DNA of 64,000 nt from Adineta vaga (GCA_021613535.1 CP075493.1:6696001-6760000), one strand, 5' to 3'; shown: positions 32,611-39,043, counted from the stretch's first letter. Numbers and translations: made by a program. The notes: generated by a model from the letters alone, not told the origin.

Positions 32611-33871
32611 TCAATCAGATGATGTTTGGCGTAGATTATTACATATTGATTCATAGATACTTAGAGTAATAGCAGTGGAGAGATAAGCTTTGATCAGGCT
32701 TGGTGTTATGCCTTTATAAAGTCCAACAAAACCTTCACTACGAATGATTTCAGAAAAACAATTGGTCATACCAGAATAAACACGTGTCTAAAAGAGAATG
32801 TTTTGATTCAATAATTGTTTATTCTGTTGATTAAAATTATGTACCTGTCCGAATTTTGAACGTGCCTCTTCGAAGGTTACAACTTCAAGACGTTTTTTAG
32901 TTATATCAAATGGATAGACAACAAGTTTAGCGAAGAGACCAGCAGCACCACCATTGGATAGATGTTTTAAAGATTCTATGATTACACGAAAAGAGAAAAG
33001 AATAGAAGTTAATAACAAAAATGAACTACGTATAAACTCACTAACCGAATCGATTAAGTGGTAAATGATCCCATGCTCGATTGAAGAGTTCATAGAAACC
33101 AAATATAAGCGCAGAAACAGGTGCATAAAGAATAATGGCTGGAATCAAGCCACGATAGAATCCACGAAAACCGTCACGAGCCAAGACGAGATTGATTGCT
33201 TGTATATATGATGTATAGATCTAAATAATAGTGAACAATTATCACATACATTTACATGTAATTACAGCTCGAGTTCATTGGATATAAAACTTTATGATTT
33301 ACCTTTGGTTCACCTTGTCCAACAAATCTTGTTCGTAACACATCCAATGGTTGACAACTAACTACACCCACACTCGCAGAAATGCAGCCAGCTATAGAAT
33401 GAACGATGGTTTTTTTGGTTGGTGATGATACTGTATCAGGAAAAAGTTCACCCACTTCTTTAGTCATTTTTTCGAATGCAAACATCTATGAGAATTAATA
33501 GAACTGATTTCTTTATGTTTAAAACTTACTTGTGCAACAGTATATGAAATCGAAAGAATCTGCGCTGCAATATGACCTTTCCAGAAAGCTCGAATACCTT
33601 CTTCATGATGAATTAAACGAATCGTTTGAAATAGACTTTGATATTTAGAACCTGCCTGTTGACGAATTGGTTCAATTTGAAGCTAGATATATTAATATAT
33701 ATACATAGTCGATATTCTATTGAATGACGAAATGTTCAATCCTACTTGAAAACGAATTTTCACAACATCGATGGGTTGTAACAAAAATCGTGCAACAAAA
33801 CCTGATGTCGAGCTCGCAATAAAAATTTGACTATTGGTTAAATTCTTTTTTTTCGGATCATATCCCACCAT
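32611..33871 (-). CDS. SLC25A19: Mitochondrial thiamine pyrophosphate carrier
   Basis: MVGYDPKK start, QPIDVVKIRFQLQIEPI, EEGIRAFWKGHIAAQILS, QPLDVLRTRFVGQGEPK, YPFDITKKRLEV..FEEARSKFGQ. Confidence 0.92.
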
Positions 33872-34066
33872 GATATATTTATATATCTACATAATAAAGT
33901 TATATGTATTTATATATATATATGTGAGAAACTATTCTGGATATTGTCTATGAATTTGTCAATAACGTTGGTTTCTTTTTCTGCTATGGGTTTAATGAAT
34001 GCAAAAAAGAAAAAAGTAAAATAAAAATACAAAACAGAGTCATTCAGAAAATAAAGAACATCAAAT

Positions 34067-35580
34067 TTAAACACCTTTGTAAACAGGTTTTCGTTTTTCT
34101 TGAAAAGCTTTTAAACCTTCGATACGATCTTCCGATGTCAAAACCGTATCATAACAACCTTCTTCTACATCGAGACCTGTCTGAAGATCAACTTCTATGC
34201 CCTTGTTAATGGCTTGTTTAGCCATTCGAACAGCCAATGGTCCCTAGATAATTAAATGAAATAAAAAGAAAACAAATTTTGTTTTTGATCTATTGAGAAA
34301 TAATTAGATAGGTACCTGTTGAGCGATTTCTCGTGCGATTTCAAGTGAACGTTTATATGCTGCATTCAATTGTTCATTTTGTTTAACAACTTCATTAACG
34401 AGACGAATATCATATGCTTGTTGTCCATCTAATACTCGTCCTAGAAAAACAAGATTTCTTTTCTCGATGAAGTTTTCATCTTTGACAACAAACCGGTATA
34501 GATTAGTTCTTTTGCTTTAGCTGAACCAATTAATCGTGGTAATCGTTGTGTACCACCTGCACCAGGGATAATACCTAATTTTGTTTCTGTTAATCCAAGT
34601 TTAGCTGTATTTGCTATAAAATTCGAATACATGAAATGTGTACAATCAAAACAATGCTTTCTCACCTGCTATACGAATGTCACAAGCCAAAGCTAATTCA
34701 AGACCACCACCCAGTGCCAAACCTTTGAGCAAGAAATATTTTTGTTAAAAAGGATAGTCAATTTGATATTATTCATGTCTGAATGAATACATATCAACGA
34801 TAATTGTCATCTAGCTTCGAAATTGAAAAGAATATAGGGTGATTCTAGATAGTATGAGTCATCTATTTTTTCTCCATTGTTTCTATAAATTGTTGGCAAT
34901 ATCACTGTTGTGTTCTATCAATCATGATTTTTGACTTACCATCAAGTGCTGCAATAGTTGGTATTGGTAAACCGAAGACTTTTGAAAATATTTCTTTGAT
35001 TTTCGACACGAATGGTCCTACTTCTTCTTGAGGCATATTGATTCGTTCTTTCAAATCAGCACCTAATAAACGAAAGAAATAGCAAACTCTATCTCTCTCT
35101 TCATTATATGACATAGCAATTTTTACCAGCACAGAAGACATTTGGAACCAAACTATGAAAGAGAACACATCGAATTTTTTTATTATCTTTGATACTATCC
35201 ATTGTGGCATCCAGCTATAAGAATAGTCTATAAAAGTTATTATTTTTATATATTAAATTGATCTACCTGTGCAAGTAGTTCTTTACCAAGTGCATTGCGT
35301 CTTTCACCACGATTGAGAGCAACTTCAATAACATCTATAAGAAAAAAAGGATGAAAATAACTATAGAAAGAAACTGGTGATTATTATTATATTTACGTTC
35401 ATGTTCACCCGTGAGATTAGTAACTTGAAGTTCAGGTGCTGATGGACCTATTTCAACGGAAGCTTCGACTTTTGTTTCTTTACTTTTCTCTGTCGCTAGA
35501 TATCGACGAGATGCAAAAGCCACATAAGATGGAAGTCGATTTATAATTGACGGCTGAAAACAATATTTTAAAGATTTCAT
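34067..35580 (-). CDS. AUH: Methylglutaconyl-CoA hydratase, mitochondrial
   Basis: [92 protein letters not shown]. Confidence 0.95.
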
Positions 35581-36801: not shown

Positions 36802-37059
36802 CTTTAATAGAAAAAAAAAGAGAGAAAGAACGAAAAAAAAGAACAATGAAATAATTCAGAATATTGTTTTTTTTCTTTTGGTATATAACATATCATTAGA
36901 CACAAAGAAAAGGACACGATCATCTGAACGTTGATAACAAACAAAAAACACGAAATGGAATTAACCTAAAGAATGTATATACGTATAGAAAAGATTTTCA
37001 ATCCTTTTCTCTACAGATACATGTTTATTTGAGTTTTGATATGAAAGGAAAGAAAAAAT

Positions 37060-39043
37060 TTATTGTAATTCTTTGTTAAGTTTGTCATGAGCATCGTTTC
37101 GATCATTTTCATTGTCGAACCGTAGTAGGACAAGAGCCAAATCACCTTCTTTCACTTCAGGCATGCCTGGATTTATTTGACATACAAAAGTGAGATCTTT
37201 TGCGGAGTGCTTTTTCACTTCGATAGGTTTGCACCAAAGAATATTCAAATATAATCGACCTAGATTGAAATATATACATATATATATGAAAACATAAGGA
37301 ATATTTTTTTACCGAGTGTATCATCAGATCGAATGATTAATTGATGTTTTCCATTGGTTTCTTTGAGTATAGCTTGCACAGGTCCACGTTTTATTAATTT
37401 ATCACCTTTTTTTACACCCATTCGACATCTAAAGAAAGAATGAAAGTTTTCAAATATGATACAAGTGATTCTCTCAGTAAAAGTCGAGAAATCGAATTAG
37501 TTATAATCATTGACTTCATTTTTTCGAAACAAAAACGACTGTAGACGAAATTTTTGAAATCATTACCTGTATGTTAGTTTAGCATCGGTTTCGTGTTCAA
37601 CCTTTTCTGGTTCTGGTGGTTCACTTGTTTCTATGATGAAAAGAAAAAAGGTTCTATCATGATTTGAATAACTTCTTTTCTTTTAACTTACCATCATCAT
37701 TATCATCTCCTGTACCTTGTTGCTCTGTATTTGCAACTGGAGTTGAGCCGAATAGAAGTTTTAATGGTGGAGCAAAACTTATGGATGATGCTGAACTAGT
37801 CGATGTTTTTTCGGCACTTCCTAGATTACTGAAAGGTGAACTGAACGTTGACTAAAAAGTACAGTTTAATAGATATTAACATCAACAGTAAGCTTTCTCA
37901 TTTTTTACCGTTCCAAATCCTGTCGATGGTATATTGAATGCGAATGGTGATGGGTTAGTTGCTTTCTCTGGCGATGTTGATGCTGCCGGTAGTTTAAAAC
38001 TAAAACCAGTAGAGGGTGACGAGTCGCCAATTGCTGTTAATGGTTTGGAGAAAGTAAAACCAGTGGTAGGTAGTGTATCACTAGTTGTTGTTGTTGCTGC
38101 TGTCGATGATGATGATTTCGAGAAACTAAATCCAGCTGTTGTTAGCGTTGATGATTCAGTCGATGCTGTTTTAGAAAAACTAAAATTAGTCGATGGTACT
38201 GAATCGCTATTTGCTGTTGTTGTTGTTGTTGCTGTTTTTGTAAAGCTAAAGCTAGTAGTATTATTAGTAGTAGTAACGGCAGTATTAGGCGTTGTTGTTG
38301 CTGTTGTTGTTGTTGTTGTTTTAGGAAAGTTTAGAACTGATGATGATGAAGTGGTTGTTGTTGCTGTTATTGGATGAAATTGGAATGATGATGTTGTTGA
38401 TTGAACTGATGTTGCAGTTTTATTAGTAATAGCATTATCTGCTGATATTCCATTTGAATTCTTATCAATTATATGATCAAAATCATGACGTGCAAGTGCT
38501 TCATACACATCAATTGTTTCTTGTAAACATTTAACTATATCTAAAAGTAAGATTTTGTTTTTTGTCATATATATATTTATGTTATTATAATTGCAAGAAA
38601 CCTGAACGAGATTGTTTAAGTCTTGTTTGAAGCCATGGTGAATATTGCAATAAATCATCTTCATAGGTAAAATATTGACGTACATAATCTAGACAATTTC
38701 CAACGAGAACACTATATTGTTCAGCTTCAACTTGCGAAGAAATCGATGCAACAAATTGACGATTTAATTCAAGTAAACGTGGAGGATAGACTTCGATTGT
38801 TTTCTTGTGAAAATCATATACTTTCTACAAAAACGACACAAATAAGATAAAATAATCATAACAATTTGTTTCTAAACCTGTGGAGGTTGTTGTTGTTGTT
38901 GCTGCTGAGCCGATTTTTCTTGTGAAATAGTTTCATCATCTTCGTCTTCTGCATTGACATCATCATTCTTAAAATCAAATATGAAAACAGATGACTAATG
39001 TCATTTTATTGAAAATTGATTCTCTTACTTTTCGTTTTGGCAT
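37060..39043 (-). CDS. NUP50: Nucleoporin NUP50 (N-terminal basic motif, FxF repeats, C-terminal Ran-binding domain)
   Basis: MPKRK start; LLELNRQF..NCLDYVK block; Thr/Ser-rich FSF/FTF repeats; RanBD-like QLIIRSDDTLGRLYLNILW..FVCQINP..LVLLR. Confidence 0.8.

Follow-up and report, generated by a model that had tools for sequence, protein, structure and literature searches.

Examination of a 64,000-nucleotide (nt) stretch of the genome of the bdelloid rotifer Adineta vaga (GCA_021613535.1, CP075493.1:6696001-6760000; hereafter, the window), an AT-rich sequence with a G+C content of 31%, revealed four intron-rich genes lying head to tail on the minus strand. From upstream to downstream, these are a NUP50-like gene (37060..39043; eight exons and 499 codons, with orthologous exons in nine contigs), GEMIN2 (35628..36801; six exons, with collinear pieces of the Pfam family SIP1), an AUH-like gene encoding an enoyl-CoA hydratase of the methylglutaconyl-CoA hydratase type (34067..35580; eight exons, Pfam ECH_1) and a mitochondrial carrier gene (32611..33871; six exons, all with Pfam Mito_carr). 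The lengths of the coding sequences were derived from the coordinates by arithmetic, while protein and profile searches were conducted exon by exon. The subject of this report is whether these genes, or some of them, constitute an operon resolved by spliced-leader trans-splicing, as an initial annotation of the same sequence had proposed.

The stop-to-ATG gaps of 258, 47 and 195 nt given in that annotation proved to be exact upon re-reading of the coordinates, with the NUP50-GEMIN2, GEMIN2-AUH and AUH-carrier spacers occupying positions 36802..37059, 35581..35627 and 33872..34066 of the minus strand, respectively. The sequence also agreed with what had been described at the three downstream start codons. 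Specifically, the ATG of AUH comes immediately after tttattctag, an acceptor-like sequence that ends at 35581, the ATG of GEMIN2 is preceded by a long pyrimidine run and ttaaag, and the carrier gene presents an AG 15 nt upstream of its ATG (tatgtag/atat..., with the slash here and below marking the putative splice boundary), where the AG at 33888-33887 ends the acceptor.

Identity of the clustered genes

Four GEMIN2 exons matched, in order, positions 3-22, 61-117, 156-189 and 190-214 of the SIP1 profile (PF04938), each scoring below the gathering score of the family because the exons were searched separately. Full-length homologues of 276-284 amino acids from A. steineri, A. ricciae and several Rotaria species carry PF04938 and are named Gem-associated protein 2 and, together with the collinear SIP1 pieces, support the name given to this gene. 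In the AUH-like gene, ECH_1 was detected on five exons, three of which exceeded the gathering score. When the last exon was compared with solved structures, the best animal match was human AUH (1hzd; E = 2.3e-17), with ECHS1-type chains appearing at values of about 1e-5. The ECH_1 matches and the closeness to 1hzd thus uphold the name AUH, with assignment to the AUH subtype of hydratase being likely on the basis of the one exon compared.

All six exons of the carrier gene scored above the gathering score of Mito_carr (PF00153), with two exons corresponding to each repeat, and the matches among solved structures were to ADP/ATP carrier and UCP chains. As such, the original designation of SLC25A19 stands as concerns the mitochondrial carrier family, whereas the subtype is a matter of resemblance, presumably to human SLC25A19, the thiamine pyrophosphate carrier. 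The name NUP50, on the other hand, found no backing in Pfam or among solved structures. Five exon pieces yielded no Pfam match at E <= 0.1, including to the NUP50 (PF08911) and Ran-binding (PF00638) families, a weak test given that the exons were searched unjoined. Likewise, the last exon matched no solved structure, either alone or as a nine-sequence profile, and no Pfam family is on record for the A. ricciae orthologue. Features read by eye include an N-terminal MPKRK, FSF/FG-type repeats and a C-terminal RanBD-like part, and the gene is accordingly referred to as NUP50-like. When second copies were sought in the genome, GEMIN2 exon 3 found only a weak match of 30% elsewhere, which is not an orthologous copy, and AUH exon 1 found no match elsewhere.

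The GEMIN2-AUH junction across bdelloids

Homologous contigs were reached via open reading frames (ORFs) corresponding to AUH and GEMIN2 exons, and the exons of the window were mapped onto each contig. The set includes assemblies with a named GEMIN2 from A. ricciae (L025/L026) and Rotaria socialis (L027/L028). Since L022 is closely related to L026, and L011 to L027, the independent lineages number nearer eight than twelve. Conservation of order and gap size in related genomes had been put forward in the initial annotation as a check on the operon, and the gene order was indeed the same, and the exon structure nearly the same, in all of the bdelloid contigs mapped.

The GEMIN2-AUH spacer spans 29-105 nt in 12 bdelloid contigs, all of which present YAG/ATG at the start of AUH (ttcTAG, ttcCAG or tttCAG before the ATG). 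Outside the acceptor, the spacer could not be aligned between contigs, as was also true of the last intron of GEMIN2, and footprinting identified no conserved block in either. Across the last exon and intron of GEMIN2, no conservation was seen other than that due to coding constraint. In the window, ATTAAA overlaps the GEMIN2 stop codon (35632-35627) and an A-run is found at 35611-35601. A[AT]TAAA lies over the same stop codon in 9 of the 12 contigs.

Several further observations were made at this junction. In L024 (9696-9943), a G+C-richer lineage, intron 5 of GEMIN2 has been lost and the GEMIN2-AUH spacer is the shortest seen, its 29 nt consisting almost entirely of a CT-rich tract and CAG. 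A TTGTATAAT-like motif is found 20-25 nt before the AUH acceptor in L013, L015, L019, L021, L026 and L027, that is, in about half of the lineages, and is missing from the 47-nt spacer of the window itself. A branch-point region and a TATA-like element are both conceivable readings of this motif. When further bdelloid loci were sought with AUH exon 8, two more genomic loci were found, with the other matches being to enoyl-CoA hydratases of at most 68% identity that are probably bacterial. Finally, the contig of P0008 (ENA ERZ25069412; 37.5 kb) presents the order SIP1, AUH exon 1, ECH and Mito_carr, but stretched across more than 10 kb beside a mariner-type transposase, and may represent a relative with a looser arrangement, its copies of these genes lying far apart.

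Acceptor sites and the spliced leader

A weight matrix for 3' splice sites was built from the 24 cis sites of the four genes. The sites preceding GEMIN2, AUH and the carrier gene scored 8.7, 6.5 and 9.7, respectively, as compared to a leave-one-out mean of 6.1 (standard deviation, 2.3) for the cis sites. These three sites rank at the 95th-99th percentile among the 2804 AGs on the minus strand, and each is the top-scoring AG of its own spacer. This ranking, like the retention of YAG/ATG at AUH in 12 of 12 contigs amid an unalignable spacer, exceeds what chance would produce. The seven introns of the NUP50-like gene are all at least 53 nt long, such that a GEMIN2-AUH spacer of 29-47 nt cannot contain both a 5' exon and an intron. 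Fusion of GEMIN2 to AUH via the conserved G/GTCAAT at the end of GEMIN2, the only donor-like site identified there, was considered and rejected, since the product would be out of frame and encounter an early stop. Judging from their sequences, the GEMIN2, AUH and carrier acceptors are candidate trans-splice acceptors with no matching cis donor.

The 23-nt rotifer spliced leader has been published (PMC3795323, Table 1), and its addition to ordinary, monocistronic bdelloid genes is established (Pouchkina-Stantcheva and Tunnacliffe, 2005, as cited in PMC3795323). A search of the 100.8-Mb genome (six contigs) revealed at least 59 copies of this leader within two mismatches, as opposed to none in a reversed control. 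In the copy inspected, a GTAAAT donor directly follows the leader, and the 5' part of a leader-bearing mRNA would be expected to end in ...CTTACCAAGAG. The leader RNA genes mostly occur as head-to-head pairs about 154 bp apart (e.g., L002:1340-1524), and the main type frequently shares a pair with a variant that has A at leader position 10. Only variants of a single leader were seen. The presence of these genes means that trans-splicing machinery is encoded in the genome. An inverted pair of leader genes was also labelled by Rfam, below threshold, as a MIR821-like hairpin, which is a mislabel.

The AUH-carrier junction and the downstream end of the cluster

The AUH-carrier spacer spans 104-195 nt in 10 contigs. 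In all 10, an AG is found 1-15 nt upstream of the carrier ATG, mostly as TGTAG/AT. A conserved block, CCATTAAAC, is present in the spacer in six of the 10 contigs and carries a variant of the poly(A) signal. In the window, this corresponds to ATTAAA at 33996-33991, some 100 nt before the carrier acceptor.

Public annotation of A. ricciae joins AUH and the carrier gene into a single model of 637 amino acids (L026:7229-10100), while in the other A. ricciae assembly (L025:7229-13174), the model reaches 1453 amino acids, apparently including the next gene. Fusion of this sort is a typical side effect of such spacing, and these models are probably annotation errors arising from it.

The cluster probably ends at the AATAAA found at 32549..32554 on the minus strand, about 57 nt past the carrier stop codon. 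Beyond the carrier gene, more than 1.5 kb separates the cluster from the next minus-strand ORFs. Within this stretch, a conserved non-coding block of about 200 nt lies on the minus strand at 32142-32341, 270-470 nt past the carrier stop codon. The block, strongly kept in L029 and L030, includes CAGTTTGCGACATTG, AAGTATTACG and GGTGCCACTCT..TGTCACAG, ends in a donor-like AAG/GTCAGT and has no match in Rfam. It probably represents the promoter of the next co-oriented gene (ORFs at 28416-30034) along with a first exon that is non-coding. Farther on, two plus-strand ORFs at 25820-27388 have the look of rhodopsin-type G-protein-coupled receptors, with DRY and NPxxY motifs.

The spacers flanking the NUP50-like gene

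Given how the initial annotation placed the NUP50-like gene at the head of the unit, the two spacers that flank this gene were considered. The NUP50-GEMIN2 spacer spans 164-258 nt in nine contigs. AATAAA occurs on the minus strand at 37029-37024, 33 nt past the NUP50-like stop codon, and recurs at this distance in three lineages. It is followed on the same strand by a conserved hairpin formed by AGAAAAG (37010-37004) and CTTTTCT (36993-36987), a conserved TTCTTTAG/GTTAATT (36968-36959), AACGTTCAGAT (36932-36922) and a conserved AATATTC..TTCATTGTTCTT (36865-36839). Across the contigs, TAGGTTAATT is found in all nine and ACAACGTTCAGATCAT in eight, CCAAT-like and TTCATTGTTCTT blocks are also kept, and TTAAAG/ATG at the start of GEMIN2 is invariant in 9/9. 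RNAalifold detected no consensus RNA structure in this spacer, and no intercistronic spacer of the cluster matched Rfam. Ranking second among the 3' splice sites of this spacer, with a score of 5.4, is TTCTTTAG/G, with the acceptor at 36966.

The conserved blocks of this spacer may constitute an internal promoter, in which case the NUP50-like gene would be a separate unit that ends at the AATAAA 33 nt past its stop codon, and the operon would begin at GEMIN2. This version of the operon, to which we would give a little less than an even chance, draws on the breadth with which the blocks are kept, on the lack of a consensus RNA structure and on the recurrence of AATAAA in three lineages. It is countered by the possibility that TTCTTTAG/G serves as an upstream leader acceptor, which may provide GEMIN2 with some 165 nt of conserved leader and would leave only 57-96 nt past the NUP50 stop codon, a spacing of the nematode type. 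In addition, the blocks share no motif, by eye, with the GDI/NUP50 spacer. Because the NUP50-GEMIN2 spacer contains conserved promoter-like blocks, membership of the NUP50-like gene is doubtful, and the chance that it belongs to the same unit as GEMIN2 is put at less than even. Thus, of the unit originally proposed, the polycistronic nature finds support in a layout conserved in two bdelloid families and in the leader genes of the genome, whereas the role of the NUP50/GDI promoter as its driver was called into question by the blocks conserved in the NUP50-GEMIN2 spacer of nine contigs.

Upstream of the NUP50-like gene, the plus-strand GDI gene begins with an ATG at 39545 and is transcribed divergently, with PF00996 being found in its relatives. 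The 501 positions between the two genes (39044..39544; no strand assigned) probably contain a bidirectional promoter, with blocks being conserved between the window and L010/L011. An acceptor-like gtttcag lies on the minus strand at 39068..39074, 24 nt upstream of the NUP50-like ATG, and is a possible outron or leader acceptor of the first gene. Its matrix score is only 2.2. The window, L026, L027, L011 and L024 all retain a Y-tract with CAG or TAG at a distance of 23-28 nt from the start codon of this gene. The long conserved blocks and an acceptor near the NUP50-like ATG fit a promoter followed by an outron. The same spacer contains the 9-mer GTAGCGACA once in each orientation (39128-39136 and 39347-39355), and these are kept in L010/L011. 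As a marker for promoters, GTAGCGACA or WGCGACA was rejected, being not enriched in the window and occurring also within AUH exon 1.

Discussion

The gene layout, the quality of the acceptors, the conservation of both and the existence of leader RNA genes are direct observations on the locus. Taken together, they are best read, at the GEMIN2-AUH junction, as a polycistronic unit resolved by trans-splicing, with the same probably holding for the AUH-carrier junction. Overall, we assign a probability of roughly 0.55 to a spliced-leader operon that covers at least GEMIN2-AUH and probably the carrier gene as well. In such an operon, RNA polymerase II would read GEMIN2, AUH and the carrier gene as one precursor, which the NUP50-like gene may head. 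The upstream message would be cleaved and polyadenylated inside the short spacer, with the A[AT]TAAA that overlaps the GEMIN2 stop codon and the ATTAAA downstream of AUH serving as poly(A) signals, and the 23-nt leader would be trans-spliced at tag/ATG (35581) in the case of AUH and at the gtag located 15 nt upstream of the start codon in the case of the carrier gene. Co-transcription, addition of the leader at the AUH, carrier and GEMIN2 sites and the positions of poly(A) addition are all predicted here from sequence. That bdelloid rotifers possess true operons resolved by their single leader, with this one being of a tight type, having a poly(A) signal over the stop codon and an acceptor abutting the ATG, and having been kept since the split of Adinetidae and Philodinidae, is a proposition for which we see about even odds.

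The content of the spacers also argues for the operon. The likely promoter regions nearby, namely the GDI/NUP50 spacer and the stretch past the carrier gene, present long conserved blocks. In the GEMIN2-AUH and AUH-carrier spacers, nothing is kept beyond a poly(A) signal and an acceptor, which is the appearance expected of an internal operon junction.

Several points nonetheless weigh against this reading. Neighbours outside the proposed operon (a protein kinase, GDI and the next gene) have likewise retained their order in A. ricciae and R. socialis, such that synteny alone is not specific, and it is the spacers and acceptors that carry the argument. Since the leader is added to ordinary bdelloid genes, an acceptor near an ATG is no proof of a polycistron. 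A promoter may lie within the 3' part of GEMIN2, and the AUH-carrier spacers, at 104-195 nt, could have room for a small promoter. A search for the leader joined to the ATG of AUH or GEMIN2 gave no match in metagenome contigs, a weak objection given that these may hold no rotifer mRNA. Similarly, AUH exon-1, GEMIN2 exon and 208-amino-acid L024 GEMIN2 ORFs matched only genomic contigs and proteins from annotated genomes and no transcript contigs, in a search from which records of the window's own or a very near genome may be left out.

In an alternative explanation, the genes are packed closely but expressed independently, with the promoters of AUH and the carrier gene being embedded in the 3' part of the preceding gene and a short outron being removed by leader trans-splicing, such that the acceptors would be genuine in the absence of a polycistronic precursor. 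Such an arrangement accords with the established trans-splicing of monocistronic bdelloid genes, the NUP50-GEMIN2 spacer illustrates that promoter-like blocks are possible between co-oriented genes, and the size of the AUH-carrier spacers is in its favor. We nevertheless consider it unlikely, given that GEMIN2's last exon and intron reveal coding constraint only, that the GEMIN2-AUH spacer of one lineage is only 29 nt long and that neither this spacer nor that between AUH and the carrier gene contains conserved blocks like those at the putative promoters nearby. Less probable still is that the acceptors belong to cis-spliced introns in 5' untranslated regions with distant, for example shared, non-coding first exons, or that the AG is part of the start-codon context. 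In favor of this, a first exon that is non-coding, conserved and terminated by AAG/GTCAGT seems to be present in the next downstream gene, and TAG/GTTAAT in the NUP50-GEMIN2 spacer is donor-like. However, the first exon of AUH would fall in or before GEMIN2, where no conserved donor offering a usable frame was identified, and the pyrimidine tract and YAG present in 12/12 contigs have the score of a complete 3' splice site and not just of an AG.

Operons resolved by a spliced leader have been described from nematodes, tunicates, flatworms, chaetognaths and some protists, with nematode operons being enriched for RNA-processing, nucleoporin and mitochondrial genes. In comparison to these systems, the proposed operon appears closest to those of Ciona intestinalis, Oikopleura dioica and the C. 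elegans SL1 type at the GEMIN2-AUH junction, and to the roughly 100-nt spacing of nematodes at the AUH-carrier junction. The two tunicates, like the arrangement proposed here, use one type of leader for monocistronic and operon genes, place the acceptor at the gene boundary, and combine functionally unrelated housekeeping genes across very short spacers, these being 0 nt in Ciona and 23-30 nt in Oikopleura (PMC1488885). The locus described here belongs to a different phylum, Rotifera, and differs in its stop-to-acceptor distances of 29-105 nt and in the A[AT]TAAA that overlaps the stop codon in 9 of 12 contigs, whereas most upstream cistrons of Ciona and Oikopleura are without AATAAA (PMC1488885).

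In C. elegans, SL1-type operons have almost no intercistronic DNA, a canonical upstream poly(A) signal and the general leader (PMC1488885). The tiny spacer, the upstream poly(A) signal and the proposed use of the general leader are points in common with the layout considered here, although operons of this type are a small minority in nematodes. In SL2-type operons, about 100 nt separate the poly(A) site from the next acceptor (Blumenthal, as cited in PMC1488885). Co-oriented genes and an ATTAAA about 100 nt before the carrier acceptor are points of likeness, and the NUP50-GEMIN2 junction might also match this type were the acceptor at 36966 used. In contrast to the SL2 type, no operon-specific second leader is known in rotifers.

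Chaetognaths, being gnathiferan relatives of rotifers, offer a further comparison. In Paraspadella gotoi, where trans-splicing is widespread, operons account for 18% of genes and have no leader specific to them, and they were defined by spacers of less than 250 bp together with leader evidence, with genome-wide RNA support (PMC12460157). Chaetognaths differ from the present case in their unrelated leader sequences and in that the operon considered here is predicted from DNA sequence. The same study lists rotifers among the lineages with trans-splicing and operonic transcription and contains no rotifer operon data (PMC12460157), while another is explicit in stating that no operons have been reported in rotifers (PMC7986045). 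Indeed, none was reported in the papers searched.

The GEMIN2-AUH-carrier locus thus offers a well-conserved candidate example of a rotifer operon, without settling the question of whether rotifers have operons. If the proposed reading is true, the 5' untranslated region of the mature downstream mRNA would consist of the 23-nt leader alone, and the fused gene models encountered in bdelloid annotations, such as those of A. ricciae, would be explained. A proven rotifer operon would also matter for how expression data are interpreted in a model animal that is asexual and tolerant of desiccation. Moreover, it would add a phylum to the list of those with spliced-leader operons and would bear on whether operons arise wherever leader trans-splicing exists.

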